From: Anaeramoeba ignava BMAN
Taxonomy: Eukaryota > Protista > Anaeramoebae
DNA length: 64,000 nucleotides
Direction: 5' to 3'
NCBI GenBank assembly: GCA_028826165.1
Contig: JAPDFW010000119.1
Span: 1 to 64,000, forward strand
Shown here: positions 1 through 64,000 of the stretch, piece by piece
Layout of the letters: every line of letters begins with the position of its first letter
Position numbering within the stretch: position 1 is the first letter of the stretch
Program-made: the position numbers and the translations under genes
Notes under the pieces: model-generated
Told to the model about the DNA's origin: nothing
Databases searched by the model: none
The model's input: only the letters and a program-made list of their open reading frames with translations

Positions 1-3000
1 TAGCATTAATATCAAGTCCTTTTTCAACCAAATACTTGATAACTTCTAAAGATGAATTACACTGGCAAGCAATATGTGAGAGCTGTTTGATTTTGAGTTG
101 TTTTTTCATTAATATCAATTCCTTTTTCAATCAAATATTGAATAGTTTCTATTGATGGATTGTATTGGCAAACAAAATGGAAAATTGATTCGTTTTGATT
201 TGTTTTTTCATTAATATCCATTCCTTTTTCAACCAAATATTTGATAACTTCAAGTGAAGAATTGTATTGACAAGCAATATGTAAAGCTGTTTGATCATAA
301 TTTGTTTTAGCATTAATATCAATTCCATTTTCAACTAAATATTTAATGATTTCTAATGGAGAATTTTTTTGACACACAATATGTAAAACTGTTTGATTTT
401 CAATAGTTTTAGAATTAATATCAATTCCTTTTTCAATTAAATATTTAATAACTTCAAGAGATGGATTGTATTGGCAAATAAGATGCAAAATTGTTTCATT
501 CCGAGATGTTTTTTCATTAATATTCATTCCTTTTTCAATTAAATATTTAATAACTTCAAATGATGAATTATTATATTGGCAAGCAATATGTAACGCATTT
601 TCATTCCAACTTGTTTTTGCATTAATATCAATTCCTTCATCGATCAGTAATCGAATAACTTCAATTGGATTATTGTTTTCACAAGCAATATGCAAAGCTG
701 TTTGATCTTGTTTTGATTTTTCATTAATATCAATTCCCTTCTCAATCAAATATTCAATAACTTCAATAGAAGAATGGTTTTTACAAGCAATATGCAACAA
801 TGTATAATTTTGGTTTGCTTTGGAATTAATATCAACACCTTTTTCAATCAAATATTCAATAACTTCAATAGAAGGATTATGATGAAAAGCAATATGGAGA
901 GCTGTTTCATTTTGATATGTCTTTGAATTAACACTTATTCCTTGCTCAACCAAATATTGAATAATTTCAAAGGATAAATTATGTTGACAAGCAGAATGCA
1001 AAGTTGTTTCATTAGAATTTGTTTTGGCATTTATATTTGCTCCTTTGGAAATCAAATATTGAATAACTTCAAGTGATGTGCTATATTGACAAGTAAAATG
1101 TAAAACTGTTTCATTTCGTGTTGTTTTGGCATTAACATCCATTCCTTTTTCAATTAAATATTTGATCACGTCAAATGAGATGTTATATAAGCACGCAAAA
1201 TGTAAAGCTGTTTGATTCCGTTTTGTTCTTGCATGAATATTAATTCCTTTTTCAATCAAATATTGAATAACTTCAATTTTAGTTTTATACAAACAAGCAA
1301 AATGTAAAGCTGTTTCATTTTGATTTGTTTTTGCATTAATATCTATTCCTTTTTCAATTAAATATTCAATAACTTCTAATTCTGGTTTGTATTGGCAAGC
1401 TAAATGCAAAGCTGTTTCATTTTGAGTCATTTTTGAATTAATATCAATTCCTTTTCAATCAAATATTTAATAACTTCAAGAGATTGATTTTGATGTTGAC
1501 AAGCATAATGTAAAACTGTTTCATTTTGATTCGTTTTAGCATTAATATCAACTCCTTTTGAAATCAAATATTTAATAATTTCAAGTGATGAATTGTTTTG
1601 ATTTTGGCAAGCTAAATGTAAAGCTATTTGATTTTTATTTGTTTTAGCATTAATATCAACTCCTTTTTCAATTAAATATTCAATAATTTTAAGAGATGTA
1701 ATATATTGGCAAGCAAAATGTAAAGCTGTTTCATTTTGATTTGTTTTAGCATTAATATCAACTCCTTTTTCAATTAAATATTGAATAATTTCAAGTGATG
1801 AATTGTTTTGATTTTGGCAAGCAAAATGTAAAACTGTTTGATTTTGATTTGTTTTAGCATTAATATCAATTCCTTTTTCAATTAAATACTGAATAACTTC
1901 AAGAGATGTAATATATTTGCAAGCAAAATGTAAAATTGTTTGATTTTGATTTGTTTTAGCATTAATATCAACTCCTTTTTCAACTAAATATTTTATAACT
2001 TCAAGAGATGAATTATTTTCACATATATAATGTAAAATTGTTTCTTGATCAATTGTTTTTGAATTAATATCAATTCCCTTTTCAACTAAATATTTAATAA
2101 CTTCAAGTGATGAATTGTTTTGACAAGCATAATGTAATGGTGTTTGGTTTGTATATGATTTCTCATTGATATTAATTCCTTTTTCAACTAAATATTTAAT
2201 AACTTCAAGTGAATTATTTTTACATGCATAATGTAAAACTGTTTCATTAAAATTTGTTTTAGCGTTAATATCAACACCTTTTTCAATCAGATATTTGATA
2301 ACTTCAAGTGATGAATTATTTTGACAAGCTAAATGTAAAATTGTTTTATTTTCATTTGTTTTAGCATTAATATCAACATCTTTTTCAATCAAATATTTGA
2401 TAACTTCAACTGAATTTTTTTGGCATGCATAATGTAAAACTGTTTCATTAAAATTTGTTTTAGAATTAATATAAACACCTTTTTCAATCAAATATTTAAT
2501 AACTTCAAGTGAATTCTTTTGACAAGCTAAATGTAAAATTGTTTTATTTTCTTTTGTTTTTGAATCAATATCAACACCTTTTTCAATCAAATATTTAATA
2601 ACTTCAAGTGAATTTTTGTGACATGCTAAATGTAAAATTGTTTGATTAAAGTTTGTTTTAGAATTAATATCAACACCTTTTTCAATCAAATATTTAATAA
2701 CTTCAAGTGAATTCTTTTTACATGCAAAATGTAAAATTGTTTCATTATGAATTGTTTTAGCATTAATATCTATTTCTTTTTCAATTAAATACTTGATAAC
2801 TTCAAGTGATGAATTCTTTTTACAAGCAAAATGTAAAATTGTTTCATTAGATTTTGTTTTTGCATTAATATCAATTCCTTTTTCAATTAAATATTGAATA
2901 ACTTCAAGAGATGAATTGTTTTTGCATGCAAAATGTAAAGCTGTTTCATTATGAATTGTTTTAGAATTAATATCTATTCCTTTTTCAACTAAATATTTAA

Positions 3001-3346
3001 TAACTTCAAGTGAATTATATTGACATGCATAATGAAATGGTGTTTTTGTTTTTTTATCTTTTGAGTTAATTGAAATTCCTTTTGAAATGAAATATTCAAT
3101 AATTTCAATTTGGGATTTATTTATAATTGAAATGTGTAATAAATTTCTTTCTTTTTCATCTTTTAAATTGATATTTATTCCTTTTGAAATTAATAATTCA
3201 ATTATTTCTTTGGAAACTTTTTTTTGAATTGCAAATTTAATTATTTTTTCTTTTTCTTCTTCTTCTAAAATTGATTTGATTTCTTTTAATTTGTAAATTT
3301 CTTCTTTTTCAATTATTTCATAAATGTTTTCATTATTATTATTCAT
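1..3346 (-). CDS. Long ankyrin-repeat protein (>30 repeats), tandem paralog of the ankyrin-BTB gene at 3950-7778; runs off the left edge; two 1-nt frameshifts (~1452 and ~77)
   Basis: ORFs 1427..3346 and 57..1430 are continuous repeats of KTxxxxTxLHxACxxxxSLEVIKYLIEKGxDINA. At ~1452 the run reads CCTTTTCAATC (4 T) versus 5 T in the other repeats. At ~77 one extra base breaks ALHIAC, after which HIACQCNSSLEVIKYLVEKGLDINA resumes to position 1. The N-terminus MNNNNENIYEIIEKEE matches that at 7778. Confidence 0.9.
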
Positions 3347-3507
3347 TTTAAAAATGAAAAAAAATGAAAAAAAATGAAAAAAATAATTTTGATTTTTTTT
3401 ATTCTTTCAAAAATTATTCTTTTTAAATATTCTTTTTAAATATTATTTTTAAATATTCTTTTTAAATATCCTTTTTAAATATTCTTTTTAAATATTCTTT
3501 CTTTTTA

Positions 3508-3595
3508 ATTAAATTGTGAATTTAAATTTAATTGATAATAATCTTTTAATTCTTCAAATTCTTCATTATTAATATTTTCTTTTTCATTTTCTTTT
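3508..3595 (-). repeat. Duplicated 3'-end fragment of the ankyrin-BTB gene (ENEKENINNEEFEELKDYYQLNLNSQFN*)
   Basis: Near-identical to 3950-4040 and embedded in a (TTTTTAAATATTC)-like low-complexity tract. Confidence 0.85.
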
Positions 3596-3949
3596 TAAAT
3601 ATTTCTTTTTAAATACTCTTTTTAAATATCCTTTTTAAATATTTTTTTAATTATTCTTTTCTTTTTAATTTTTAAATATTGAATTCTTTTTAAAAATTTA
3701 AATATTATTTTTAAATATTCTTTTTAATTATTCTTTCAAATTTAAATTTGAATTAAAATTTAATTTTAAATCTTTTAATTTTTAAATATTCTTTCTTTTT
3801 AAATATTATTTTTAAATATTCTTTCTTTTTAAATATTATTTTTAAATATCCTTTTTAAATTTTCTTTTTAAATATTCTTTTTAAATATTCTTTTTAAATA
3901 TTATTTTTAAATATTATTTTTAAATATTCTTTTAAATTATTCTTTTATT

Positions 3950-6900
3950 TTAATTAAATTGTGAATTTAAATTTAATTGATAATAATCTTTTAATTCTTC
4001 AAATTCTTCATTATTAATATTTTCTTTTTCTTTTTCTTTTTCAAATTCATCATGATAAAGAAAATAAATAAATTGTTGAATTGTTTTAAATGATTTTCTT
4101 GAATAATCATGAACTTGATTTGATGAATCATTAACACTTAAAAACATTCCTTTAAATAATTCACTTCTTAATATTAATATTAATTTATCAACTTTAATTT
4201 CTTTTTCTTCAACAATTATTGTAAAATCTTTTGTTTCATTTTGTTGATATAATTTTGATAAATCTTTGATTATTCCTTTTCTTCTTTTTTTACTTTCAAT
4301 CCAATTTGAATTAATTCCAATTTCTTCAAAAAATTGTTTAATTTTTGTTTCATTTTCTTCAATTTCTTTTAATACTCTTGTTTCTTCTTGATAAATTCTC
4401 ATTCCCCAAAAACTTATTCTTCGATTTTGATTTTGATTAATTTGATTTTGATTAAATTGATAATTTAATTTTTCAATAATTTGTTTAAAATTAGGAAATC
4501 CAGTATAAATAAAATTAAGAATATTTTCAACTTCTTCTTTGGTTTTTTGAAAACAATTATCAATAAATTTTTGTAAAATTGAATTATCATTATCAAATCT
4601 TGTTAATAAAATTAATTTATGAACTTTAAATTTAAATGAATCATTTGTTCTAATTTCAAAATCTGAAAAATTATCATTTGAATTTAATAAATTGTTTAAA
4701 TCTTGATTAATTGAATAAATTTTTAAAAATGAATCAATAAATTCTTTTTTAATTTCATCTTTTTGTAAATCATAAATATCAACTTCATTTTTTAATAAAA
4801 TTTCAATTAATTTTATATTTTCATTTTTGATTGCTAATGAAAGTGGAGTTTGATTAAAATTTGTTTTTGTGTTAACATCAACTCCTTTGGAAATCAAATA
4901 TTCAAAAACTTCAAAAGATGAATTATAGTAACAAGCAATATAAAAGGGTGTTTCATTTGAATTTGTTTTTGCATTAATATCAGCTCCTTTTTCAACTAAA
5001 TATTTAATAACTTCAAATACATTATTGTAATGACAAGCAATATGTAAAACTGTTTGATTTTCATTTGTTTTAGTGTTGATGTCAGCTCCTTTTTCAACTA
5101 AATATTTAATAGTTTCAAATGATGGAATATAATATTGACAAAGTGTATGTAAAGCTGTTTTATTTTGATTAGTTATTGCATTAATATCAATTCCTTTTTC
5201 AACTAAATATTGAATAATTTCAAGAGATGGTTTATATTGACAAAGTAAATGTAAAGCTGTTTGATTTCGATCTGATTTTGCATTAATATCAATTCCTGTT
5301 TCAATTAAATATTTAATAACTTCAAAAGATGGATTATATTGACAAGTAATATGTAAAGCTGTTTGATTTTGACTTGTTTTGGCATTAATATCAATTCCTT
5401 TTTCAACCAAGTATTGAATAATTTCTATTTGAGTATTTTTTTCACAAATAATATGTAAAGCTGTCTTGTTTTGAACTGTTTTAGCATTAATATCAATTCC
5501 TTTTTCAATTAAGTATTTAATAACTTCAAGAGGTTTATCTTTCATACAAACAAAATGTAAAGCTGTCTGATTTTGATTTGTTTTAGCATTAATATCAATT
5601 CCTTTTTCAACTAAATATTTAATAACTTCAAGAGATAAATTATTTTGACAAGCTAAATGTAGACATGTTTTTTTTTGGTTTGTTTTAATATTAATATTAA
5701 TTCCTCTTGAAATCAAATATTTAATAGTTTCAAAAGATGAAATGAATTGACAAGCGAAATGTAAAGCTGTTTCGCCATGACTTGTTTTAGCATGAATATT
5801 CGTTCCTTTTTCAACTAGATATCTGATAACTTCAAGTATATTGTTATGTTGGCAAGCAATATGTAAAGCTGTTTCATTTTTTTTTGTTCTACCATTAATA
5901 TTAATTCCTTTTTCAACCAAATATTTAATAACTTCTATTTTTTGTTTATATTCGCAAGCAACATGTAAAACTGTTTCGTTTTGATTTGTTTTTGCATTAA
6001 TATCAATTCCTTTTTCAATTAAATATTGAATAACTTCAAGAGATGGAATATATTTGCAAGCGAAATGTAAAGCTGTTTCATCATAATTTGTTTTAGCATT
6101 AATATCAATTCCATTTTCAACTAAATATTTAATAACTTCAAGAGATGGAATATATTTGCAAGCTAAATGTAAAGCTGTTTCATCATAATTTGTTTTAACA
6201 TTAATATCAATTCCATTTTCAACTAAATATTTAATAACTTCAAGAGATTGATGTTGATGTTGACAAGCATAATGTAAAACTGTTTCATTTTGATTTGTTT
6301 TAGAATTAATATCAACTCCTTTTTCAATTAAATATTTGATAACTTCAAGTGAATCCTTTTGACAAGCTAAATGTAAAGCTGTTTCATTTTGATTTGTTTT
6401 TGAATTAATATCAACTCCTTTCTCAATTAGATATTTGATAACTTCAAGTGAATTCTTTTGACATGCTAAATGCAAAGCTGTTTTCCTTTGATTTGTTTTT
6501 GAATTGATATCAGCACCTTTCTCAATTAGATATTTAATAACTTCATGTGAATTCTTTTTACAAGCTAAATGTAAAGCTGTTTTCCTTTGATTTGTTTTTG
6601 AATTGATATCAACTCCTTTCTCAACTAAGTATTTAATAATTTCAAGTGGTGAATTATTTCGACAAGATAAATGTAAAGTTGTTTGATCATGAATTGTTTT
6701 GGAATTAATATCGACTCCTTCTTCAATCAGATATTTGATAACTTCAAGTGAATTATATTGGCAAGCATAATGTAAAATTGTTTGCTTTTGATTTGTTTTT
6801 GCATTAATATCAACACCTTTTTCAATCAAATATTTGATAACTTCAAGTGAATTATATTGACAAGCTATATGTAAAGCTGTTTGATTTTGAATTGTTTTCG

Positions 6901-7778
6901 CATTAATATCTATTCCTTTCTCAATTAAATATTTGATAACTTCAAGTGAATTTTTGTGACAAGCTAAATGTAAAACTGTTTTATTTTCATTTGTTTTTGT
7001 GTTAATATCAACTCCTTTTTCAATCAAATATTTAATAACTTTAAGTGAATTTTTTTGACATGCAAAATGTAAAATTGTTTCATTTTCATTTGTTTTAGCA
7101 TTAATATCAACACCTTTCTCAATCAAATATTTGATAACTTCAAGTGAATTATATTGACATGCATAATGTAAAACTGTTTCATTTTCATTTGTTTTAGAAT
7201 TAATATCTATTCCTTTTTCAACTAAATATTTAATAACTTTAAGTGAATTCTTTTGACATGCATAATGTAAAACTGTTTCATTTTCATTTGTTTTAGAATT
7301 AATATCTATTCCTTTTTCAATCAAATATTTAATAACTTCAAGAGATGAATTGTTTTTACAAGCATAATGTAAAATTGTTTTATTTTCTTTTGTTTTTGCA
7401 TTAATATCAATTCCTTTTTCAATCAGATATTTAATAACTTCAACTGAATTATATTGACATGCATAATGAAATGGTGTTTTTGTTTTTTTATCTTTTGAGT
7501 TAATTGAAATTCCTTTTGAAATGAAGTATTCAATAATTTCAATTTGGGATTTATTTATAATTGAAATGTGTAATAAATTTCTTTCTTTTTTATCTTTTAA
7601 ATTGATACTTATTCCTTTTGAAATTAATAATTCAATTATTTCTTTGGAAACTTTTTTTTGAATTGCAAATTTAATTATTTTTTCTTTCTTCTTCTTCTAA
7701 AATTGATTTGATTTCTTTTAATTTGTAAATTTCTTCTTTTTCAATTATTTCATAAATATTTTCATTATTATTATTCAT
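3950..7778 (-). CDS. Ankyrin-repeat protein (~28 repeats) with C-terminal double BTB/POZ-like module; intronless; 2-nt homopolymer deletion near 7685
   Basis: ORF 3950..7324 extends upstream in frame. The ATG at 7778 matches the paralog start at 3346. C-terminus contains FSDFEIRTNDSFKFKVHKLILLTR and KDFTIIVEEKEIKVDKLILILRSELFKGMFLSVNDSSNQVHDYS...YYQLN (BTB signatures). Confidence 0.9.
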
Positions 7779-7873
7779 TTTAAAAATGATAAAAAAATGA
7801 AAAAAAATGAAAAAAATAATTTTGATTTTTTTTATTCTTTCAAAAAAAAAAAAACAAATTTAAATTTTAAACT

Positions 7874-10800
7874 TTAAAGATCAAATTTTTCATCTCCATT
7901 TGATTGTTCATCTGGAGAATTTGAAATAAAATCTTCATCTAAATCATCTTGTAGATCACTAAAATAAGTTGAAATTATTTCTTGAGATTTTTTTGAAATT
8001 TCTTCATTTGGATGTTTTAGAAGATTTTCAATAAGTGGAAGAGCTCCTCCTTCTTCAATAGTATCTGCATAAGGATTTTGCTCATCCATTGAATTTTTTC
8101 CAATTTCAAGAATTGACTGTAAAGCTTCTAAACTAATCATAAGAATTTCTTTGTCTGTGTTTGTTAATAAATCACAGATAGGATTAATTGCTCCTTGATC
8201 AACAATATATCTAAAAAATAAAATTAAATTAAAATAAATTGATTAATTTTTTTTGAACTAGCAAAAAAAAAATTTGAACTAGCAAAAAAATTGTTTTGAG
8301 AACAAACCGAATCTGGTCAGGATTTGCTCCTGTAATTGCATTTGAGACTGCCCATGATGCTTCTTTTTTTACTTCAAAAACATCTGTAGAAAGAATTGTG
8401 ATTAAACGTTGAATTAAATCAGGAATTTCAAGAACTTTTTGGATTTGGAGTTCTGTTCCAGCAGTGATATTGGATATTATCCAACAAACTTCTTTGCGAA
8501 GAGAAACTCGAGAATGTTTTAAAAGATTGACCAATGTAGGAAGTGGATTATAACTCAATACATCATCTGTTTGTTCGTCTTTTCCAGTTACAACATTTCC
8601 AAGAAGTCTTAAAACTGGAGTGAGTAATTTAAGATTATTAGTTCTAAATTTTGATAAGAAATTGAGAGGAAAAAAAAAATTTTTTTTTTTGAACCAAATT
8701 GAGTTTGACATTCTTTTTTTTTTTGAAAATAATATTAGTTTTAATTTTACGTTAAAAGTTCCATAACACGAGGTAAAATTCCAGCTTGAACACAAAATTC
8801 AATTTCATCATCATCACCATTTGTCATATAAGCCAAAGCCCAAGAAGAATCAATAACAGTTTCGATTTCATCAAGATTTATGAGTTTTTCGAGATAAGGA
8901 AGAGCTTTTGCAATCTAAAATGTAAATAAATATTATTTATATTTATATTTATATTTATATTTATATTTATATTTATATTTATATTTATAATTATATTTAT
9001 ATTTATATTTATATTTATATTTATATTTATATTTATATTTATATTTATATTTATATTTATATTTATATTTATATTTATATTTATATTTATATTTATATTT
9101 ATATTTATATTTTAATTATATTTATATTTATATTTATATTTATTTATATTTATATTTATATTTATATTTATATTTATATTTATATTTATATTTATATTTA
9201 TATTTATATTTATATTTATATTTATATTTTATATTTATATTTATATTTATATTTATATTTATATTTATATTTATATTTATATTTATATTTATATTTATAT
9301 TTATATTTGATTTATATTTATAATTATATTTATATTTATATTTATATTTATATTTATATTTATATTTATATTTATATTTATATTTATATTTATATTTATA
9401 TTTATATTTATATTTATATTTATATTTATATTTATATTTATATTTATATTTATATTTATATTTATATTTATATTTATATATTTATAGATTTAGATTTATA
9501 ATTATATTTATATTTATATTTATATTTATAATTATATTCAATTTATATTTATATTTATATTTATATTTATATTTATATACTAATGGAAATGTTGGTTTGG
9601 GTTTTCCTCGAATTAAATTGGAAATTGCCCAAGCTGAATTTTGAATTATTCCTGGATTAGATGTTTGATCTAAAATATTCAAAATTTTTTCTAAAGTTCC
9701 AAGTTGTAAAAGTTCATCACGATATTCAATTCGATCTCCTGCAATATTTCCAATTGCCCAAATTGACTTTTTTTTTGTTTAAAAAAAAAAAAGATAAAAA
9801 TTTCCCAATAAAATTATTAAAGATTGTTTTGTTTTTCCATCTTAAAATTCAATCCAAAAAAAAAATACTTGTTCTTGAACATTTTCATCTTGAAAAGAAA
9901 GTAAATTTGCAAATATTGTTATTGCATTTGCTTGAACAACAATTTGTGTTTGTTCTTTTGTTCCTGAAGCTATATTTGTTAAAATCCAAGCTGCTTCAAA
10001 CTATTATCATTTTAATTTTCATTATAATTTTAATATTAATTTTAATTTTAATTTTAATTTTAATTTCAATTTTGATTTTAATTTTAATTTTGATTTTAAT
10101 TTTAATTTAAATTTTAATTTTAATTTTAATTTAAATTTTAATTTTAATTTTAATTTTAATTTTAAATTTAATTTTAATTTTTTAAATTTTAATTTTAATC
10201 CAAAAATATTTTGTTTTTAAATTACATTTTAATTTTAATTTTAAAATTTAAATTTTAATTTTGATTTTTAATTTTAATTTTTAATTATAATTTCAATTTT
10301 AATTTAATTTCAATTTTAATTTTGAATTTTATTTTTAATTTTAAATTTTGATTTCAATTTTAATTTAAATTTTAAATTTTAATTTTGATTTTAATTTTAA
10401 TTTTAATTTTAATTTTAATTTTAATTTTAATTTTAATTTTAATTTGATTTTAATTTTAATTTTAATTTTAATTTTAATTTCAATTTTAATTTTAATTTTA
10501 ATTTTAATTTTAATTTTGATTTTAATTTTAATTTTTAAATTTTGATTTCAATTTTAATTTAAATTTTAAATTTAATTTTGATTTTAATTTTAATTATAAT
10601 TTTAATTTTAATTTTAATTTTAATTATAATTTTAATTTTGATTTTGATTTTAATTTTAATTTTGATTTTAATTTTAATTTTAATTTTAATTTTAATTTTA
10701 ATTTTAATTTTAATTTTGATTATAATTTTAATTTCAATTTTAATTTTAATTTTAATTTTAATTTTAATTTTGATTATAATTTAAATTTTAATTTTAATTT

Positions 10801-12817: not shown

Positions 12818-14170
12818 TCAAAATCTTTCCCAAACACCAGAACACAAATCTCTTGCTTTTTTCATAACATCAGCTTCATCAAAAGTTAAAATCTTTCTAT
12901 TCTTCATAATAACCTTTCCATGGACAACGGAAGTTGAGATATCAGCACCAGCCATACCGAATACGAAGTGCCAAGGGAAGTTACCAGAATTAATAGGAGT
13001 AGGAGGATCATAATCCGAAATAACGAAGTCAGCAAAGGCGCCAACTTGCAGAACGCCAACGGGAGCAGAAAAGAATTTTGAAGCAATTGCAGAATTGTTC
13101 TGAAACAAAAGCTGCATGACTTCTGCGCCCATAACGCGGGGATCACTGTGGTGGTGTTTGTGTATAAAATAGGTTGATTTTGCTTCTTGGAACATATCAT
13201 AAGTAATTCCATCAGTTCCAAGTCCAACAAGCAAATTGTGGGAAAGAAACCCCATAACGTCAGAAACCCCTCCAACGCCATTATTCATATTAGATTCGGG
13301 ATTGTGCAAAATATTAACGCCTCTTTCGGAAAGAAGCTTTATTTCGTCAGAATCAACAAAAACACAATGACCAGCCAAAGTGTTTTTATTCAAGATCCCA
13401 AACGAATCAAGACGCTGAACAGTGCGCTTGCCGCACAACGCCAGACTCTCCTTAGCATCAGTCCCATCTTCTGCAATATGGATATGGAATCCCGTCTTCT
13501 CCAAAACTTCCTTTGGCAATTTTTCCATTTCACTTTTGCATTTCTTCAACGTTGCATCCGACAGTGTAAACGCGGCATGAAGTCCAAAAGCAGCTGCTGT
13601 GTACGGATCCGGATCCTCCATATATGTCTTCTTGATGAATCTAATATTCTCAGCAATCCCTTCATCCGCTCCTTTTTCACCATTGCGATCAGTTACTTCA
13701 TAACAAAGACATGATCGAATTCCACTTTTTTTAACGGCTTTTTGGATCACGTCAAGTGAACCGTTTATGAAATTTGGTGACGCGTGGTGGTCAATAATAG
13801 TTGTAGTCCCTGCTTTGATAGCTTGGATTATGCACACCATCGCACTGCTTTCTGTTGAGTCGCTGTCTAACGCCTTGTCAAGTCGCCACCACAATTTCTC
13901 AAGAACTTCCACAAAGTTTTTTGGTGGTTCGTCGGTTTTAAGTCCCATCCCCCGTGAATACATCCCATAGAAATGCCCGTGTCCGCAAATCAAGCCGGGC
14001 AGCACTAGCTTGTTCTCTGCATCAATTACTTCTGTTGATTCTGTTTTGTATTTCTCTTCTAATTTTTTTGTTTCATCAATTTCTTTGATTATTCCGTTTT
14101 CTATGTATAATCCATGTTGTGGTTTTAGTTCTTTTCCTGTAAATAATAATGCATTAAGAAGTAAAGTCAT
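12818..14170 (-). CDS. ssnA: SsnA-like metal-dependent amidohydrolase (450 aa), intronless, GC-rich relative to neighbours
   Basis: Amidohydrolase motifs LPGLICGHGHFY (HxH), WWRLDKALD, IDHHASPN, YEVTDRNG, GLHAAFT, FHIHIAED, HNPESNMNNGVG, LGTDG closely follow bacterial SsnA. First ATG is at 14170; the ORF-track start is a TTG. Confidence 0.85.
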   Translation of the reverse strand: MTLLLNALLFTGKELKPQHGLYIENGIIKEIDETKKLEEKYKTESTEVIDAENKLVLPGLICGHGHFYGMYSRGMGLKTDEPPKNFVEVLEKLWWRLDKALDSDSTESSAMVCIIQAIKAGTTTIIDHHASPNFINGSLDVIQKAVKKSGIRSCLCYEVTDRNGEKGADEGIAENIRFIKKTYMEDPDPYTAAAFGLHAAFTLSDATLKKCKSEMEKLPKEVLEKTGFHIHIAEDGTDAKESLALCGKRTVQRLDSFGILNKNTLAGHCVFVDSDEIKLLSERGVNILHNPESNMNNGVGGVSDVMGFLSHNLLVGLGTDGITYDMFQEAKSTYFIHKHHHSDPRVMGAEVMQLLFQNNSAIASKFFSAPVGVLQVGAFADFVISDYDPPTPINSGNFPWHFVFGMAGADISTSVVHGKVIMKNRKILTFDEADVMKKARDLCSGVWERF

Positions 14171-14224
14171 ATTTTTTTGTTTTGAATAAATGAAAAAAAT
14201 GAAAAAATCAAAAATCAAAAAAAA

Positions 14225-22900: not shown

Positions 22901-23022
22901 AAAATTCTAATGAAAATTCTAATGAAAATTCTAATGAAAATTCTAATGAAATCAAGGATGAAATTAAAGATGAAATTAAAGGAGAATCTAATGAAATTAA
23001 AGATGATTCAAATGAAAAATGA
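19993..23022 (+). CDS. KCS: 3-ketoacyl-CoA synthase, copy 2; exons 19993-20033, 20108-20367, 21217-21746, 22153-23022; C-terminal (NSNE)n extension
   Basis: Same motifs and identical intron positions as copy 1. Confidence 0.93.
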
Positions 23023-24319: not shown

Positions 24320-24372
24320 TTTTTCATTTTTCATTTTTCATTTTTCATTTTTTCATTTTTTTCATTTTTCGA
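24320..24372 (+). promoter_or_regulatory. Tandem TCATTTT initiator-like motifs upstream of the WD40-BTB gene
   Basis: (TTTTTCA)n about 60-110 nt before ATG 24429; the same motif precedes many genes in the window on their sense strand. Confidence 0.45.
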
Positions 24373-41716: not shown

Positions 41717-41848
41717 TCAAAAAAGAAAATGAAAAAATGAAAATGAAAATGAAAAAATGAAAAAATGAAAAAAAAATTAAATTCAAAAAAGTTTTTTTCC
41801 GATTTTTTCCAAATTCATTTTTTCTTTCCTTTTCTTCTTTTTATTTTT

Positions 41849-47957: not shown

Positions 47958-48051
47958 AATAAAAATCAAAATTAAAATCAAAATTACAAAAAATTTTTTC
48001 ATTTTATTTTTTCATTTTTTTTCTTTTCAATTCAATTCAATAAAACAAAAA

Positions 48052-49946: not shown

Positions 49947-50393
49947 AATTAAAATTAAAATTAAAATTAAAATTAAAATTAAAATTAAATTATTAATTAG
50001 GAAATTTAATAATCAAAATTAAAATTAAAATTAAAATTAAAATTAAAATTAAAATTAAAATTAAAATTAAAATTAAAATTAATATTAAAAATTAAAATTA
50101 AAATTAAAATTAAAATTAAAATTAAAATTAAAATTAAAATTAAAATTAAAATTAAAATTAAAATCAAAATTAAAATTAAAATTAAAATTAAAATTAAAAT
50201 TAAAATTAAAATTAAAATTAAAATTAAAATTAAAATTAAAATTAAAAATTAAAATTAAAATTAAAATTAAAATTAAAATTAAAATTAAAATCAAAATTAA
50301 AATTCAAAATCAAATTCAAAATCAAAATTAAAATTAAAATTAAAAAAATTTTTTCATTTTATTTTTTCATTTTTTTCAATTCAATAAAACAAA

Positions 50394-52277
50394 ATGAACC
50401 CAAATCAAAATCAAAATCAAAATCAAAATCAAAATCAAAATCAAAATCAAAATCAAAATCAAAATCAAAATCAAAATCAAAATCAAAATCAAAATCAAAA
50501 TCAAAATGAATTTTTATTTTTTGGTTTAAATGATTTTCCAAAACTTACCACAAATGAACCAGAAAAAATAAAAAAACCAATTCAATTTAAATTTGAAAAT
50601 GAAAATGAAAATGAAAATGAAAATAAAAAACAAATTAAACAAATTTCATCAGGAAGTTTTTCAACAATTTTCCTTTTTGAAAACGGAAAAGCAATACAAT
50701 ATTTAAAGGGAAATCAAAATACTCAAAAAATCCAAATTAAAAATATTCAAAAAGTATCTGGTATTTATCATATTGAAGCTATTTTAACAAAAGAAGGAAA
50801 TGTATTTGCCAAAGGAAATGATGTTAATCCAAAAAATCCACATCAACTTATTAATATTTCATCATTAATTGAAGATAAAAATGATAGAATAATTCAAGAT
50901 ATTGTTTCTGGAAATACTTCAGTTTACTTATTAACTTCAAATCAAAATGTTTATGGAATTGGTTCAAATGAATATGGTCAACTTGGTTTAGATTCCAAAA
51001 TGTTTGGATATAAACAAAAACCAATTTTAATGATGAAAAATGTTTCTAAAATATTTTCAGGAAATTTTTCAGAATATGTTTTTCTTTTGGATTCAAATCA
51101 AGAATTATTTGGATGCGGATGGAATTCATATGGTCAACTTGGATTAGGAGAATCAAGAAAAGGAAAAATCCAAAAATTAACCAAAATCCAAAATATTCCA
51201 AAAGGCAAAATAATTGATATTCAATGCTCTGATGCTCATTCAATAATGATGATTGCAAATGATGTTGGAAAAAGAAAACTTTATTCATGTGGAAATTATT
51301 ATTCAAATGGACTTGGAACAGAAAAATATGAAGAGGATACTTATGAATTTACTGAAATTAAATCATCTTTATTTGAAAATGATTATATTATTGATTTTTC
51401 TGTTGGATTTAATCATACTTTGATTTTAACATATAATTCAAAATTAATAGGATTTGGAAATAATGAATTTGGACAATTAGGAACTGAAGATATAGAATAT
51501 GATCAACTAACTCCAATTCAAATTGAACTTCCTAAATTAAGATTTAATGAAAATATTTCCAATTATCATCTTTCTTGTGGAGATTCGGATTCATTTCTTT
51601 ATTATTCTCCTTTTCTTTCTTCTTTTTTTTCCAATCTTGAAGAAGATTTGATAAAACTATTTCGAAGAAAAGAATTTTGCAATATTTCATTTAAAACAGA
51701 AAATGGAGAAATAATTGAAGCTCATAAATTAATATTGAAATATAGATTAAAAGATGAAAATCAAATTGAAAAACTTCAAGAAATTATTTCAAATAAATCA
51801 ATTAAAGAATCAAATCAAATATTTGAAATGATTTATTCAAACAGAATAATAAATCCAATATTATATTCTGAAATTAAAGAAATTATAAATTCCAATGAAA
51901 AAATTGAAGAAACAATGAAAAGAATTTATTTAAATGAAAATGAAAATGAAAATGAAAAAGATTTTATTATTGAAAGAAAAGAAAAACAATATAAATTTCC
52001 TAAATTAATATTAATAATGAGAAGTGAATTATATCGAGGAATGTTTTTATCTGTAACTGAAGATACTTCAAATAAAGTTAAAGATTATAGTGAATTAAGT
52101 AATAAACCATTTCAAATATTAGAATATTGGATTTATTCAAATCAAATCAAAGATGGAATTCAAATTACAGAAGAAATCATTGATGAAATTCAAATTGGAA
52201 TTGATTATTTTCAATTAAATCAAACAAATCCAAATTTATTTGATTTATTAATTAAAAAATTTAATAATCAAAATTAA
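50394..52277 (+). CDS. RCC1-repeat + double BTB-like protein, copy C, with N-terminal (NQ)n
   Basis: Intact 627-aa ORF with the same motifs. Confidence 0.92.
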   Translation: MNPNQNQNQNQNQNQNQNQNQNQNQNQNQNQNQNQNQNEFLFFGLNDFPKLTTNEPEKIKKPIQFKFENENENENENKKQIKQISSGSFSTIFLFENGKAIQYLKGNQNTQKIQIKNIQKVSGIYHIEAILTKEGNVFAKGNDVNPKNPHQLINISSLIEDKNDRIIQDIVSGNTSVYLLTSNQNVYGIGSNEYGQLGLDSKMFGYKQKPILMMKNVSKIFSGNFSEYVFLLDSNQELFGCGWNSYGQLGLGESRKGKIQKLTKIQNIPKGKIIDIQCSDAHSIMMIANDVGKRKLYSCGNYYSNGLGTEKYEEDTYEFTEIKSSLFENDYIIDFSVGFNHTLILTYNSKLIGFGNNEFGQLGTEDIEYDQLTPIQIELPKLRFNENISNYHLSCGDSDSFLYYSPFLSSFFSNLEEDLIKLFRRKEFCNISFKTENGEIIEAHKLILKYRLKDENQIEKLQEIISNKSIKESNQIFEMIYSNRIINPILYSEIKEIINSNEKIEETMKRIYLNENENENEKDFIIERKEKQYKFPKLILIMRSELYRGMFLSVTEDTSNKVKDYSELSNKPFQILEYWIYSNQIKDGIQITEEIIDEIQIGIDYFQLNQTNPNLFDLLIKKFNNQN

Positions 52278-52733
52278 AATTAAAATTAAAATTAAAATTA
52301 AAATTAAAATTAAAATTAAAATTAAAATTAAAATCAAAATCAAATCAAAAATTAAAATTAAAATTAAAATTAAAATTAAAATTAAAATCAAAATTAAAAT
52401 TAAAATCAAAATCAAAATCAAAATCAAAATCAAAATTAAAATCAAAATTAAAATTTAAAATTAAAATCAAAATTAAAATTTAAATTAAAATTAAAATTAA
52501 AATCAAAATCAAAATTAAAATTAAAATTAAAATCAAAATTAAAATTAAAATTAAAATTAAAATTAAATTAAAAATTAAAATTAAAATTAAAATCAAAAAT
52601 TAAAATTAAAATCAAAAATTAAAATTAAAATTAAAATTAAATTAAAATTTAAATTAAAAATTAAAATTAAAATCAAAATCAAAATTAAAATTTAAAAAAA
52701 TTTTTTCATTTTTTCATTTTTTTTTTTTCAAAA

Positions 52734-53678
52734 ATGTTTTTCCAAAAAAAAGCTCATTTAATTATTATATCCTTGTTAATTTTATCAAGTATAATTCCTG
52801 GATTTTTTTATATTCCTTGGAATTTAGAAAAATTATTAACTCTTTCAACAATTATTTTATTAATACAATTTTCCAGTTGTTTTTTATTTTCAATTTTTTT
52901 CATTAAAAAAAAGAATCATCAAATGAATTCTTTGAAAAAAACAAAGACTCAACAAACAAATATAAAATTTTTTAACAAGGGATCTTTTGTTGAAAAAATA
53001 TTAAGAAGATCTGTTTCAATGATTTTATTACTTTTGATTGGAATTATTTCATTTTATTTAATTGCAATATTATTTGGAGCACCATTATTATCGTAAAAAA
53101 AAATAATAAGAATAAGAATTAATTTTCATTTTAAATTTTTCGTTATTTATTCCGTTTTTTAAAGACAATTTAAAGATACATTTAATTGGGCTTATTTTAT
53201 ATCAATTCTTTCTTTGATTCCTTTAAGTTGCTTTTATTCAATAGATGATCTAACAAGCATAAAAAGTGTTTTATTACTCAGTTATTTTTTTGGAAGAAAA
53301 ATTGGATTAAAAGAAAAAGAAGATGAAAAAAAAGCAAAAATTGAGAAAATTGAAAAAAAAGCAAAAATTGAAGAAGTTGAAAAAATTCCCAAAGTTGAAA
53401 AAATAGGGAAAAAAAAAATGTCATATTCTGAAGATGAATTGGTTGAAAATTTTATTTTTGGATTGAGTTCTGTTAGTTTTATTGGACCTGTTATTGGGAC
53501 TTGGATAAGTTCTGTTGTTTATCCACTTGATTGGGATCGACCTTGGCAAAAGTGGCCAATTCCTGCTTGTTTTGGAAGTTTTTTTGGATATGAAGTTAGT
53601 TTGGTTTTGTTTTTTTTGTTTGCTTTATTTAGATTTAGAAGAAGAGAAGATGACTTAAACAAAAAGAAATTAAAATAA
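52734..53678 (+). CDS. PIGF: GPI biosynthesis protein PIG-F/Gpi11; exons 52734-53092, 53165-53678
   Basis: AILFGAPLL and PLDWDRPWQKWPIP signatures; multiple TM helices. Confidence 0.9.
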
Positions 53679-53679
53679 A

Positions 53680-58525: not shown

Positions 58526-58729
58526 TTTTTTTTTGAACAATTTACCATTTTCCTTTTTTGATTTATTTTTTTTTGATTATTTGCTATTTTTACACGTGCT
58601 TAGATCAAATTAATATAGCAAAAGGAAAATGGATTTAAAAAGAAAACCTTCCAAAAAAAAAAATATTTTTCATTTCTTTTCAAATCAATTTTTTTTTGAT
58701 TTATTTTTTAAAATTTTTAAAACAACAAA

Positions 58730-59137: not shown

Positions 59138-59196
59138 ACTTTATTTTGAAAAAATTCAAAAATAAAAAATTTTTCATTTCAATTTTCATTTCATTT

Positions 59197-60243
59197 TCAT
59201 TTCATTTTCATTTCTTCTGCAAATTTTTCAAATTCTAAAATCTTATTTTGTATAAATTTTTCTTCTTCTTCTGGATTTCTTTCAAACCATAATTTATATT
59301 CTTGGAAAATAATCAAAAAATCAATCAGTTCAAAAATTTTTTCTCTTTCTTCAAATCCTTTTGGTTTTTGAATTCCTTTTTGGATTAATTCTGCAAAGAA
59401 AAAATCACTCAACTCTGAATCAGGAAGAATTTGTTTTGTGATAAGATGTGATCTCAAGTCATCATCTTCAATACAAGAACCGCTCCATTCCCAATCCAAA
59501 AAAGCCGTTATTTGGATATTTTTTGGATCAATCAAAATATTATCAACAGTTAAATCTGCATGAGTAAAAACAAATTGATCTTTATATTCAACTTTTGGAA
59601 GAATTTCTTCAGCGAATTTCTCCAAATAAGGAATAAAGTGTGCTAATTTTTGTTCTTCCAAAATAAAATGTTTGCCAACCTCGATTCGAGCTCGTAAATA
59701 GTCTTGGTAAGTATTAAAAGGCCCTTTTCCAAGATCAATAACTTTTGTCAAATTTAAATTTCCATTTCGATCAAGTTGAAAAGATCCTATTTGATCAAAA
59801 GTGAATTTTCTTAATTCAACCAAAAAATCTACAATTTGGATCAACACTGTTTTTTTTTGTTCTTTTGTTAAAGATTTCCAAATGCTTTCAAGAAGAACTC
59901 CTTCTTTTTTTTCTAAAATCATGTATTCAAACCCAAAAGCAGAATTTGGATCTGAAGAAAATGCCAAAATTTTTGGAATCGTAATTGTTGATTTTTCATT
60001 AAGAAATTTGTGGATTGCAACTTCATTTTCTGTTTTGATTCTTTTCCAAATTTTTCCAGGAGTTCGAATTCTTAAAACAAATTCCTTTTCACAAGAAGTT
60101 TTTATTAAATAAACAAAATTAAGAACACCTGTATTAAATCTTATCAATTCTGTACATTTGACTGATGAATCTATTAATTTTTCTTCAAGTAATAATTTCT
60201 CAACTTCTTTTATTGAGATGGAAACTTTTGGTCTTCCAGACAT
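59197..60243 (-). CDS. Aminoglycoside phosphotransferase/choline kinase-family (APH-like) phosphotransferase
   Basis: GVLNFVY, VLRI, ENEVA, PKILA, Brenner motif HADLTVDNILI, LDWEWS; intronless. Confidence 0.88.
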   Translation of the reverse strand: MSGRPKVSISIKEVEKLLLEEKLIDSSVKCTELIRFNTGVLNFVYLIKTSCEKEFVLRIRTPGKIWKRIKTENEVAIHKFLNEKSTITIPKILAFSSDPNSAFGFEYMILEKKEGVLLESIWKSLTKEQKKTVLIQIVDFLVELRKFTFDQIGSFQLDRNGNLNLTKVIDLGKGPFNTYQDYLRARIEVGKHFILEEQKLAHFIPYLEKFAEEILPKVEYKDQFVFTHADLTVDNILIDPKNIQITAFLDWEWSGSCIEDDDLRSHLITKQILPDSELSDFFFAELIQKGIQKPKGFEEREKIFELIDFLIIFQEYKLWFERNPEEEEKFIQNKILEFEKFAEEMKMK

Positions 60244-60312
60244 TTTTATCCAAATGAAAAATGAAAAATGAAAAATTCAAAAAATCATTTTTTCATTTTT
60301 TTCTTTTCAAAA
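60244..60312. promoter_or_regulatory. 69-bp bidirectional promoter candidate with TCATTTT motifs pointing both ways
   Basis: AAATGAAAAATGAAAAATGAAAAA (minus-strand TCATTT repeats) before the APH ATG, and TCATTTTTTCATTTTTT before the RCC1-BTB ATG. Confidence 0.55.
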
Positions 60313-62112
60313 ATGAATGAAATTTTATTTTTTGGTTTAAATCAATCACCAAAACTTTTCAAAAATAAATCAAATAAAATAATAAAACCAATTCAATTTA
60401 AATTTGAAAATGAAAATGAAAATGAAAATGAAAATGAAAATGAAAATGAAAATGAAAATGAAAATGAAAATGAAAAACAAATTAAACAAATTTCATCAGG
60501 AAGTTATTCAACAATTTTCCTTTTTAAAAATGGAAAAGCAATAGAATATTTAAATGAAAAAAATTTAAATGAAAATATTCAAAAAATCCAAATTGAAAAT
60601 ATTCAAAAAGTAACTGTTGGTAATGAAAATGAAGCTATTTTAACAAAAGAAGGAAATGTATTTGCCAAAGGAAGAAATATTAATCCAAAAAATACAAAAG
60701 AATTTATCAATATTTCATCATTAATTGAAGATACAAATGATAGAATAATTCAAGATATTGTTTCTGGATATAATTCAATTTACTTATTAACTTCAAATCA
60801 TAATGTTTATGGAATTGGTGATAATTATTTATCTCAACTTGGTTTTGATTATATAACACTTAAAGAAACAGAAAAACCAATTTTAATGATGAAAAATGTT
60901 TCTAAAATATTTTCAGGAAATTTTTCAAATCATATTTTTCTTTTAAATTCAAATCAAGAATTATTTGGATGTGGTGATAATTCATTTGGTCAACTTGGAT
61001 TAGGAGAATCAAGAAGAGAAACAAAAATTCAAAAATTAATCAAAATACAAAATATTCCAAAAGGTAAAATAATTGATATTCAATGCTCTCATGGCCATAC
61101 AATAATGATGATTGCAAATGATAATGGGAAAAGAAAAGTTTATTCAAGTGGAAATTGGCAATATAATGGACTTGGCAAGTATATTGAAGATACTTATAAA
61201 TTTACTGAAATCAAATCATATTTATTTAGAAATGATGATATTCTTGATTTTTCTGTTGGGCAATATCATACTTTGATTTTAACATCAAATGGAAAACTGA
61301 TAGGATTTGGGAATAATGTATTTGGTCAATTAGGAACTGGAGATACAGAAAACCAAAAAATTCCCATTCAAATTAAACTTCCTAAATTAAGATTTAATGA
61401 AGATATTTCTAATTATCATATTTATTGTGGATATTTCAGATCATTTCTTTATTATTCTCCTCCTTCTTTTTCCAATCTTGAAGAAGATTTGATAAAACTA
61501 TTTGGAAGAAAAGAATTTTGTGATATTTCATTTAAAACCAAAAATGGAGAAATAATTGAAGCTCATAAATTAATATTGAAATATAGATTAAATCAAAATG
61601 AAAATCAATTTGAAAAACTTAAAGAAATTATTTCAAAAAAATCAATTAAAGAATCAAATCAAATATTTGAAATGATTTATTCAAATAATTCCAAAATAAA
61701 TCCAATATTATATTCTGAAATTAAAGAAATTATAAATTCCAATGAAAAAATTGAAGAAACAATGAAAAGAATTTATTTAAATGAAAATGAAAATGAAAAA
61801 GATTTTATAATTGAAAGAAAAGAAAAACAATATAAATTTCCAAAATTAATATTAATAATGAGAAGTGAATTATATCGAGGAATGTTTTTATCTGTTACTG
61901 AAGATAAATCTAATAAAGTTACAGATTATAGTGAATTAAATAATAAATCATTTCAAATATTTGAATATTGGATTTATTCAAATCAAATTAAAGATGGAAT
62001 TGAAATTACACAAGAAATAATTAATGAAATTGAAATTGGAATTGATTATTTTCAATTAAATCAAACAAATCCAAATTTATTTGATTTATTAATTAACAAA
62101 TTTAAAAATTAA
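60313..62112 (+). CDS. RCC1-repeat + double BTB-like protein, copy D
   Basis: Intact ORF from MNEILFFG with the same motifs. Confidence 0.92.
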   Translation: MNEILFFGLNQSPKLFKNKSNKIIKPIQFKFENENENENENENENENENENENEKQIKQISSGSYSTIFLFKNGKAIEYLNEKNLNENIQKIQIENIQKVTVGNENEAILTKEGNVFAKGRNINPKNTKEFINISSLIEDTNDRIIQDIVSGYNSIYLLTSNHNVYGIGDNYLSQLGFDYITLKETEKPILMMKNVSKIFSGNFSNHIFLLNSNQELFGCGDNSFGQLGLGESRRETKIQKLIKIQNIPKGKIIDIQCSHGHTIMMIANDNGKRKVYSSGNWQYNGLGKYIEDTYKFTEIKSYLFRNDDILDFSVGQYHTLILTSNGKLIGFGNNVFGQLGTGDTENQKIPIQIKLPKLRFNEDISNYHIYCGYFRSFLYYSPPSFSNLEEDLIKLFGRKEFCDISFKTKNGEIIEAHKLILKYRLNQNENQFEKLKEIISKKSIKESNQIFEMIYSNNSKINPILYSEIKEIINSNEKIEETMKRIYLNENENEKDFIIERKEKQYKFPKLILIMRSELYRGMFLSVTEDKSNKVTDYSELNNKSFQIFEYWIYSNQIKDGIEITQEIINEIEIGIDYFQLNQTNPNLFDLLINKFKN

Positions 62113-62357
62113 ATTTAAATTTAAAATTCATTTTGAGATTAAAATTAAAATCAAAATCAAAATTAAAATTAAAATTAAAATTAAAATTAAAATCAAAATT
62201 TAAAATTAAAATTAAAAATTAAAATAAAAATAAAATTAAAAACAAAATTAAAATTAAAATTAAAATTAAAATCAAAATTAAAATTAAAATCAAAATTAAA
62301 ATTAAAATTAAAATTAAAGTTCCAAAAATTATTTTTTCATTTTTTTTCTTTTCAAAA

Positions 62358-64000
62358 ATGAATGAAATTTTATTTTTTGGTTGGAATCAAAACCCAAAAC
62401 TTATCAAAAATGAACCAAAAAAAATAATAAAACCAATTCAATTTAAATTTGAAAATGAAAATGAAAATGAAAATGAAAATGAAAATGAAAATGAAAGTGA
62501 AAAACAAATTAAACAAATTTCAACAGGAGGTTTTGGAACAATTTTCCTTTTTAAAAATGGAAAAGCAATAGAATACTTATCTGTAAATTATTCAAAACAA
62601 AATCCTGAAAAAATCCAAATTGAAAATATTCAAAAAGTAACTGTTGGTGGTCTAAATGAAGCTATTTTAACAAAAGAAGGAAATGTATTTGCCAAAGGAT
62701 GGAATATTAATTCAAATAATCCAAAAGAAATTATCAATATTTCATCATTAATTGAAGATACAAATGATAGAATAATTGAAGATATTGTTTCTGGATCTGA
62801 TTCAATTTACTTATTAACTTCAAATCATAATGCTTATGGATTTGCTGATAATTATAATGGACAACTTGGTTTTGATTATATAACACTTAAAGAAACAGAA
62901 AAACCAATTTTAATGATGAAAAATGTTTCTAAAATATTTTCAGGAAATTCTTCAAAATCTGTTTTCTTTTTAAATTCAAATCAAGAATTATTTGGATGTG
63001 GTGATAATTCATTTGGTCAACTTGGATTAGGAGAATCAAGAATAGAAATAAGAATCCAAAAATTAACCAAAATCCAAAATATTCCTAAAGGCAAAATAAT
63101 TGATATTCAATCTGGATATGCTCATTCAATAATGTTGATTGAAGATGAAAATGAAAATCCAAAAAGAAAACTTTATTCATGTGGAAATTGGCAATATAAT
63201 GGACTTGGCAAAATGTTTCAAAATACTTATGAATTTACTGAAATCAAATCATCTTTATTTTAAAATGGTGATGATATTCTTAATTTTTCTGTTGGAGATC
63301 ATAATTTGATTTTAACTTCCAATTCAAAATTGATAGGATTTGGAGATAATCAATTTGGTCAATTAGGAACTGAAGATACAAAATCTCAATCAATTCCAAT
63401 TCTAATTTTACTTCCTAAATTAAGATTTAATGAAGATATTTCCAATTATCATATTTCTTGTGGTAATCACAGATCATTTCTTTATTATTCTCCTCCTTCT
63501 TTTTCCAATCTTGAAGAAGATTTGATAAAACTATTTGGAAGAAAAGAATTTTGTAATATTTCATTTAAAACAGAAAATGGAGAAAAGATTGAAGCTCATA
63601 AATTAATATTGAAATATAGATTAAATCAAAATGAAAATGAAATTGAAAAACTTCAAGAAATTATTTCAAATAAATCAATTAAAGAATCAAATCAAATATT
63701 TGAAATGATTTATTCAAATAATTCCAAAATAAATCCAAAATTATATTCTGAAATTAAAGAAATTATAAATTCCAATGAAAAAATTGAAGAAACAATGAAA
63801 AGAATTTATTTAAATGAAAATGAAAATGAAAAAGATTTTATAATTGAAAGAAAAGAAAAACAATATAAATTTCCTAAATTAATATTAATAATGAGAAGTG
63901 AATTATATCGAGGAATGTTTTTATCTGTAACTGAAGATAAATCTAATAAAGTTACAGATTATAGTGAATTAAGTAATAAATCATTTCAAATATTTGAATA
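62358..64000 (+). pseudogene. RCC1-BTB copy E with in-frame premature TAA at 63261-63263; runs off the right edge
   Basis: SSLF-TAA-NGDD where copies A-C read SSLF-GAA-ND. The same frame then stays open through the last RCC1 blades and the BTB motifs. Confidence 0.82.

Follow-up and report, generated by a model that had tools for sequence, protein, structure and literature searches.

A greatly expanded tandem-BTB family in Anaeramoeba ignava: probable Cullin-3 substrate receptors with a diversifying RCC1 branch

How far does a family extend in which proteins built on unrelated recognition scaffolds all end in one constant tail, and what might such proteins do? The question is raised by the first 64,000 nucleotides of contig JAPDFW010000119.1 of the unicellular metamonad Anaeramoeba ignava BMAN (C120:1-64000 of a 42.8 Mb assembly in 147 contigs; hereafter the window), in which seven genes, namely one with ankyrin repeats, one with WD40 repeats and five with RCC1 repeats, end in a common double-BTB cassette of ~210 amino acids. 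The family that they represent is probably a greatly expanded superfamily of tandem-BTB substrate receptors of Cullin-3 (Cul3), the RCC1 branch of which is diversifying on a variable face.

On this reading, each protein would consist of an N-terminal recognition scaffold, chosen among a seven-blade RCC1 propeller, an ankyrin solenoid, a WD40 or Kelch propeller, a small GTPase, a G-alpha domain, Sel1 repeats and SKICH, and of a constant C-terminal cassette made of a shortened BTB1 packed on a full BTB2. The latter would dock H2 and H5 of the Cul3 N-terminal domain via its most conserved motif (RSxLFRGMFLSV..V.DYS, DYYQ), and the protein bound by the scaffold would be presented for ubiquitination. 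In the RCC1 branch (~1,265 motif-bearing copies) a nearly invariant framework would carry ~39 varying residues in two loops per blade, the variation being upheld by duplication in tandem, gene conversion among paralogs, selection that diversifies the loops, and pseudogenisation, which is frequent; the ankyrin branch, which is also large, would likewise evolve as variable-surface receptors on a constant framework. The hypervariable pattern and its upkeep suggest, therefore, that the proteins recognised by the repertoire are most likely very diverse or quick to change.

The cassette and the genes that carry it

The cassette-bearing genes of the window and their relatives, as delimited by open reading frames (ORFs), Pfam, a cassette hidden Markov model (HMM) and, for copy 1, AlphaFold2 (AF2), are as follows.

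1-3346 (-): ankyrin-repeat paralog, N-terminal part, in ORFs 57-1430 and 1427-3346 that lie in different frames
3517-3585 (-): relic of a cassette C-terminus, 23 codons, HMM positions 177-199 (hmmsearch E=4.5e-5)
3950-7778 (-): ankyrin-BTB gene, ~27 ankyrin repeats and cassette 3962-4717 (Pfam Ank E=5e-207, BTB E=9e-14; HMM match)
24429-27917 (+): WD40-BTB gene with several introns (NCBI model, its exons placed one by one by tblastn; Pfam WD40 families and BTB E=9e-15)
46179-47957 (+): RCC1-BTB copy 1, intact, intronless, 592 amino acids, seven-blade RCC1 propeller and cassette 47316-47954 (Pfam; AF2)
48128-49946 (+): RCC1-BTB copy 2, broken, cassette 49323-49937 (ORFs 48128-49348 and 49401-49946; alignment to copy 3)
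50394-52277 (+): RCC1-BTB copy 3, intact, 627 amino acids, N-terminal NQ repeat, cassette 51627-52268 (Pfam; HMM)
60268-62112 (+): RCC1-BTB copy 4, intact, 614-amino-acid ORF, cassette 61465-62109 (Pfam; HMM)
62358-64000 (+): RCC1-BTB copy 5, with an in-frame stop, cassette 63498-63998 cut by the window end (HMM; alignment)

Six of the window cassettes, from the alignment of which the cassette HMM (A1) was built, can be aligned along ~210 residues; identity across scaffolds is 36-41%, and 40 columns are invariant. Applied to the six-frame translation of the window, the HMM retrieves exactly seven cassettes and one relic fragment, and a DNA pattern for GMFLSV finds the same seven places (7 matches versus 0.00 expected). 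The Pfam BTB family (PF00651) scores 25-55 bits, against a gathering cut-off of 20.5, in all the cassette ORFs tested, matches two stretches in two of the RCC1 genes, and is also present in ORF 49401-49946 of copy 2. Pfam, HMM and motif pattern thus agree with the first-pass annotation, made from the letters of the window, that seven genes share the cassette on ankyrin, WD40 and RCC1 scaffolds.

The individual genes differ in detail. In the ankyrin-BTB gene, the Pfam match of which falls in ORF 3950-7324 (-) with an ATG near 7778, an insert of ~55 amino acids separates BTB1 from BTB2 within the cassette at 3962-4717 (-). The adjoining paralog at 1-3346 has a near-identical N-terminus, and its C-terminus, which presumably includes a cassette, falls outside the window, beyond its start; the relic found between the two ankyrin genes is a remnant of an earlier copy. 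The WD40-BTB gene corresponds to NCBI model KAJ5068160.1 (P0124, 494 amino acids), and its last exon (27270-27917) codes for the entire cassette (HMM 27282-27908). The start of RCC1-BTB copy 4 is likely the internal Met ahead of NEILFFG.

The disruption of some ankyrin and RCC1 genes, also noted at first pass, is seen in both ankyrin genes and in two of the five RCC1 copies. Copy 2 carries a 1-nucleotide insertion near 49328, at the propeller/cassette junction and not in a homopolymer, and copy 5 a GAA->TAA change at 63261-63263; the ankyrin paralog changes frame at 1427-1430, and the complete ankyrin-BTB gene has a frame shift near 7700, ~27 codons past the ATG, in an A-rich run. All four breaks are read from the assembly alone, so that each may be a true mutation or an assembly error.

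Family size and variability of the RCC1 branch

The GMFLSV motif occurs 1,375 times in the 42.8 Mb of the assembly, versus 2 matches for a reversed control, which corresponds to ~9% of the 15,022 proteins predicted from this genome, the A+T content of which is 80.65% (PMC11550330). The serine codon of the motif is AGY in 110 matches, as in the ankyrin and WD40 cassettes of the window, and TCN, as in all five window RCC1 copies, in the others, which leaves ~1,265 matches with the RCC1-type codon. Profile and protein searches, in each of which ~150 of the more than 2,200 first-look candidates were scored, all the scored matches being strong, recover 148 or more RCC1-type cassettes at E<1e-103 and, for the ankyrin type, 125 or more of full length at E<1e-74. 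Many divergent cassettes (35-49% identity) are found in separate terminal exons of 220-260 amino acids, and a word-based search started from the WD40 cassette yields 7 matches.

Among the first 100 motif places, 72 lie less than 3 kb from another on the same strand; therefore, most copies stand in tandem arrays of 2-6, on nearly every contig. The upstream frame is truncated in 37 of the 149 best RCC1-type cassettes (~25%). On either side of dispersed RCC1-BTB copies lie (AAAATT)n microsatellite arrays (loci L001-L030; 47958-48127 and 62113-62357 in the window), which could be substrates for unequal or ectopic recombination.

When the cassette profile is compared with 1.84 billion representatives at 50% identity, 1,350 matches are obtained at E<=1e-3 and 192 at E<=1e-30. 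The cassette sits at the extreme C-terminus in almost all of them, and in 150 representatives the median tail measures 3 residues. Pfam domains in 135 of the N-terminal parts are ankyrin (77), RCC1 (30), WD40 (8) and Ras-family GTPases (8); single look-ups add Kelch (one such protein being named LZTR1 by NCBI), G-alpha and SKICH/HECW_N, and a Sel1-repeat partner is found in A. flamelloides. The modular plan of a variable binder joined to a constant BTB tail, as first proposed from the window, is supported by these partner domains, and the N-terminal protein-interaction domain of known tandem-BTB adaptors is present here as well. The G-alpha (P0240, P0193), SKICH/HECW_N (P0203) and Kelch (P0209, P0269) fusions, the last of them LZTR1-like, all lie outside the window, and we know of no other organism in which the cassette is fused to G-alpha or SKICH. 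All 37 representatives or matches that were looked up come from A. ignava or A. flamelloides; the one A. flamelloides RCC1-BTB gene inspected is a singleton in its neighbourhood, and with RCC1-BTB copy 1 as a protein query all matches are A. ignava proteins (locus tags M0811_).

The full-length RCC1-BTB paralogs, 113 in number, are 80-87% identical in all pairs, and their entropy is confined nearly wholly to ~39 positions, being near zero in the cassette. Hypervariable columns were set on 103 paralogs and measured on 19 other genes for which DNA was at hand; the codon analyses rest on these 19 genes and on site classes fixed beforehand. At the hypervariable columns dN (non-synonymous divergence) is 0.82, versus a dS (synonymous divergence) of 0.107 and a dN of 0.019 at the conserved columns; intermediate columns have a dN of 0.23, above their dS of 0.14. 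The cassette, with a dN/dS of 0.33, is under purifying selection. The picture is that of a large lineage-specific family in which the excess of non-synonymous change is limited to the recognition domain while the docking domain is conserved, and the diversification of a large repertoire inferred at first pass is supported by the 1,375 motif matches and by the dN at hypervariable sites.

In the full-length AF2 model of copy 1 (predicted local distance difference test, pLDDT, 89.1) the hypervariable residues fall in the tip of the s1-s2 hairpin and in the s3-s4 connection of all seven blades. Because both loops share the same blade end in an up-and-down meander, the ~39 positions would lie on one common face of the propeller, as strand topology suggests. 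Tyr, Asn, Asp, Glu, Lys, Ser and Phe dominate at these sites. In the ankyrin-BTB protein of the window, the repeats vary chiefly at hairpin and first-helix positions, as judged from repeat entropy, which we take to be the positions randomised in designed ankyrin binders.

The RCC1 paralogs are mosaics. The four-gamete test is failed by 47% of informative site pairs, the pairwise homoplasy index (PHI) statistic is 0.443 versus 0.468 +/- 0.008 in permuted data (p=0.0005), and pairwise distances computed from different thirds of the gene correlate poorly. Gene conversion, therefore, both homogenises the framework and reshuffles the loops; it weakens dating from dS and leaves the contrast between sites intact.

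As to expression, the A. ignava transcriptome ORFs in EukProt include one WD40-type and one ankyrin-type cassette protein. Many unrelated genes carry, 10-60 nucleotides upstream of their start codons, a T-rich motif that encloses TCA (TTTTTCATTTTTTTC) and is often doubled; the window holds 22 matches versus 3.4 expected, and the motif resembles a core-promoter or initiator-like element of general use in A. ignava. The RCC1-BTB genes retain it upstream, which is compatible with transcription, not a demonstration of it.

14188-14206 (-), 24341-24367 (+), 41746-41772 (-), 52702-52728 (+), 60289-60307 (+) and others: TTTTTCATTTTTTTC sites located by pattern search

The cassette fold and the link to Cullin-3

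The AF2 model of the cassette of copy 1 (215 amino acids) is one compact unit (pLDDT 95.4, predicted template-modelling score, pTM, 0.90) with a shortened BTB1 and a full BTB2; the chain stops ~20 residues past BTB2, without 3-box/BACK helices. The best full-length fold matches in the PDB are tethered POZ-POZ dimers (4u2m; template-modelling score, TM, 0.58-0.60), and SPOP and KBTBD4 are among the single-domain matches. In the ESM Atlas the entire cassette resembles the tandem BTB of LZTR1, RhoBTB3, plant At2g04740 and BTBD7/8 (TM 0.73-0.78 over 202-207 of 215 residues); a feature search of the Atlas returned generic BTB clusters only. Since the match extends over the whole two-domain fold, the cassette is, judged from these models, the known tandem-BTB unit and no Anaeramoeba invention, and for the same reason the combinations of Kelch, Ras or ankyrin with the cassette would be old eukaryotic architectures rather than local ones.

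The closest known proteins are the tandem-BTB adaptors, such as LZTR1 (Kelch and two BTBs), RhoBTB1-3 (Rho GTPase and two BTBs), ABTB1/At2g04740 (ankyrin and two BTBs) and BTBD7/8, the two-BTB unit of which superposes on the 215-residue cassette; Kelch, Ras and ankyrin forms have parallels in A. ignava, where two BTB folds likewise form one compact unit and Cul3 is likewise encoded. These adaptors are, however, conserved single- or few-copy genes, usually with BACK or C-terminal extensions, whereas in A. ignava the cassette ends the protein, BTB1 is shortened, the binding surfaces are variable, and the loci number more than 1,000 for RCC1 and at least 125 for ankyrin. In the animal proteins RCBTB1/2 and IBTK an RCC1 propeller lies N-terminal to BTB, as in the Anaeramoeba genes, and many family members bear the PANTHER-derived name 'btk-binding protein-related'. 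IBTK has two BTBs and is described as a Cul3 substrate receptor (PMC4447969). The likeness is one of architecture: RCBTB has one BTB and a C-terminal domain, in contrast with two BTB units and no such domain in Anaeramoeba, and IBTK joins ankyrin and RCC1 repeats in one chain, whereas the window genes carry either and never both.

An unrooted tree built from 140 cassettes has the shape of a star, and 73 of its 137 branches lack support. Scaffold labels are clustered on it (35 changes versus 61 when shuffled), yet not monophyletic, and its well-supported branches imply that RCC1, WD40 and Ras each originated at least twice and ankyrin at least four times; the window RCC1 and ankyrin cassettes fall in pure clades of 15 and 17 representatives, respectively.

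About eight cullin loci are found in the A. ignava genome. The C58 locus has Cullin-3 as its best PDB match (4e-127, versus 2e-107 for Cul4), and its protein (P0278), which shares 45-52% identity with Cul3 from many eukaryotes, is by its sequence the Cul3 orthologue. Three other loci are Cul4-like; two Cul4-like loci, L031 (C64:571676-576454) and L035 (C109:171937-176325), have identical N-terminal sequences on different contigs, and L035 is split over two frames, which may reflect a recent duplicate, a pseudogene or assembly redundancy.

Several observations point to this cullin as the partner of the cassette. With the BTB2 half of the cassette profile, Cul3 adaptors rank first in the PDB (KBTBD4 at 3e-12, then KBTBD2, SPOP and KLHL3). 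A complex model of residues 1-380 of A. ignava Cul3 with the cassette, of the kind proposed with the first-pass annotation, scores 0.66 versus 0.00 for the best control, a mark that 51 of 78 solved complexes attain, as do 2 of 108 mismatched pairs; as similar complexes have been solved, the score shows likeness to a Cul3 adaptor, not binding. Agreement of contacts among runs is at least 77%, and the pLDDT of the partner at least 83. To the modelled interface Cul3 contributes residues 42-59 and 110-121 (H2/H5, the canonical surface), and the cassette contributes residues 135-155 and 191-197, which correspond to the RSELYRGMFLSV..VTDY motif and the DYFQ helix; interface residues are conserved above the rest of BTB2 in 140 diverse cassettes (permutation p=0.005). 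Hence the proposal that these proteins are ubiquitin-ligase receptors is strengthened in part, by the Cul3 orthologue and by a canonical modelled interface that falls on the most conserved motif, while any novelty of the cassette to Anaeramoeba falls away. The cassette probably docks on Cul3, as the model predicts.

Alternative readings and the setting of the family

Other explanations can be found for a propeller and a BTB tail in one chain. RCC1-like domains are classic GTPase binders, and the RCC1-BTB proteins might be regulators of expanded small GTPases, resembling guanine nucleotide exchange factors (GEFs) or effectors, with a face that fits Rab, Ras or G-alpha and a BTB tail used for assembly or localisation. 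This is unlikely, even if NCBI and PANTHER label many members 'claret' (a Rab-GEF-like family), the Rab and TBC families are reported to be greatly expanded in this genome (PMC11550330), and the cassette is directly fused to Ras-family and G-alpha domains: GTPase surfaces are conserved, in contrast with 39 loop positions at a dN ~8 times the framework dS, the identical type of tail is found on ankyrin, WD40, Kelch and Sel1 scaffolds, and the best-conserved surface of that tail is the modelled Cul3 interface. The family might also be the product of a largely neutral or selfish amplification by tandem and ectopic duplication, promoted by the (AAAATT)n arrays, with decaying copies and loops under relaxed constraint. 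The broken frames (~25%, and two of five in the window), the flanking arrays, the mosaic paralogs and the missing transcriptome source of the sampled RCC1-type members would all fit; nevertheless, relaxed constraint predicts a dN close to dS, as opposed to 0.82 against 0.11 at sites defined beforehand, purifying selection acts on framework and cassette (dN 0.019 at conserved columns, omega 0.33 in the cassette), the promoter-like motif is retained, and each blade varies at the same places of its structure, which makes such an origin rather unlikely.

Nor is it probable, and indeed it seems the least so, that the tail works without Cul3, in self-assembling scaffolds, decoys or inhibitors that sequester the bound proteins. 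Many BTB proteins do not bind Cul3, BTB1 is shortened, the cassette has no 3-box/BACK, and transcription-factor POZ dimers (4u2m) are among its top fold matches. Against this stand the first rank of Cul3 adaptors for the BTB2 profile, the complex model, which passes where its controls score 0.00, and the same-fold tandem-BTB proteins LZTR1, RhoBTB and IBTK, which are Cul3 adaptors.

The Cul3-receptor reading has, in turn, its own weak points. Cul3 binding and ubiquitination by the family are predicted; since BTB-Cul3 complexes have already been solved, the complex score may be a memory of that family, and one complex model is no demonstration that each of more than 1,000 copies binds. The cassette lacks the helices that strengthen Cul3 binding in KLHL and SPOP proteins. 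The dN/dS contrast is no clean rate test, because the low framework dS may partly reflect gene conversion, and the residues that prevail at variable sites (Y, N, D, E, K, S, F) are also favoured by AT-rich codon bias. Finally, about a quarter of the copies look broken, and among the RCC1-type members looked up in EukProt none had a transcriptome source.

What so many receptors would recognise is a further step. By analogy with nematode and plant adaptor families, it is conceivable, though doubtful, that more than 1,200 RCC1 receptors with antibody-like loops and at least 125 ankyrin receptors resembling designed ankyrin binders (DARPins), wired to Cul3 and reshuffled by gene conversion, form in this free-living, symbiont-bearing metamonad a germline-encoded, cell-autonomous immune system or a surveillance of symbiont or prey proteins, tagging foreign proteins for degradation. 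The size and pattern of the repertoire do recall an immune system. In work of Thomas in Genome Res (2006), the MATH-BTB and F-box genes of Caenorhabditis and plants are reportedly lineage-specific and positively selected. Like the Anaeramoeba genes, these families consist of hundreds of tandem paralogs with conserved docking, an adaptive recognition domain and many pseudogenes, and a role against pathogens has been proposed for them. The Anaeramoeba family differs in using RCC1 and ankyrin instead of MATH/FTH, in belonging to a unicellular metamonad, in its larger share of the genes (~9%) and in a far more regular loop hypervariability, with two loops in each of seven blades. A massive expansion of F-box or BTB proteins with repeat domains is also known from amoeba-associated Chlamydiae and giant viruses (PMC4209131), but those sets are parasite effectors that hijack the host ligase, whereas the Anaeramoeba family belongs to the host's own nuclear genome, has eukaryotic promoter-like motifs and contains introns in its WD40 type.

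If the Cul3-receptor reading is true, about 1 gene in 11 would code for a ubiquitin-ligase receptor whose docking tail is constant and whose binding face is hypervariable, a repertoire that would be among the largest of E3 receptors relative to genome size and would provide the first RCC1 propeller used as a diversified receptor scaffold. It would also offer a tractable system for how unicellular eukaryotes recognise many foreign or changing proteins, a question that is pointed in A. ignava because sulfate-reducing bacteria are kept in a symbiosome and much DNA has been laterally acquired. Moreover, the family could supply propeller and ankyrin binders on fixed frameworks, in the manner of a library made by nature.

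The words BTB, RCC1, ankyrin and ubiquitin are absent from the main text of the genome paper, in the supplements searched RCC1-type PANTHER names occur only among lateral-transfer candidates (PMC11550330), and among the papers searched none ties Anaeramoeba to BTB, RCC1 or cullin. The window itself, with a G+C content of 15-21%, holds eukaryotic genes with introns between simple-repeat intergenic stretches. A ciliate or other alternative genetic code is ruled out by long ORFs in the standard code and by the identity of the organism as Anaeramoeba, a giant-virus origin by introns, housekeeping neighbours and NCBI nuclear contigs, and an assembly artefact as the source of the family by copies that are distinct and present on nearly all contigs.

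The other genes noted in the window are the following.

8229-8795 (-): armadillo-repeat (importin-alpha-like) exon, an ordinary neighbour
12818-14218 (-): amidohydrolase-family gene, intronless (Pfam Amidohydro_1 E=1e-32)
17347-18785 and 21258-23022 (+): tandem pair of FAE1/type III polyketide-synthase-like 3-ketoacyl-CoA synthase genes
52734-53678 (+): PIG-F-like gene of glycosylphosphatidylinositol (GPI) synthesis, an ordinary neighbour
59197-60243 (-): APH/choline-kinase-like phosphotransferase, an ordinary neighbour

The amidohydrolase gene has a bacterial look and may have been acquired by lateral transfer, the A. ignava genome being reported to hold much DNA of such origin, and both copies of the 3-ketoacyl-CoA synthase gene are interrupted by an intron full of simple repeats. 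A hydrothermal-vent metagenome run (X6) contains 14% of the sampled words of 46179-52277, which may reflect a natural relative or the sharing of low-complexity sequence.

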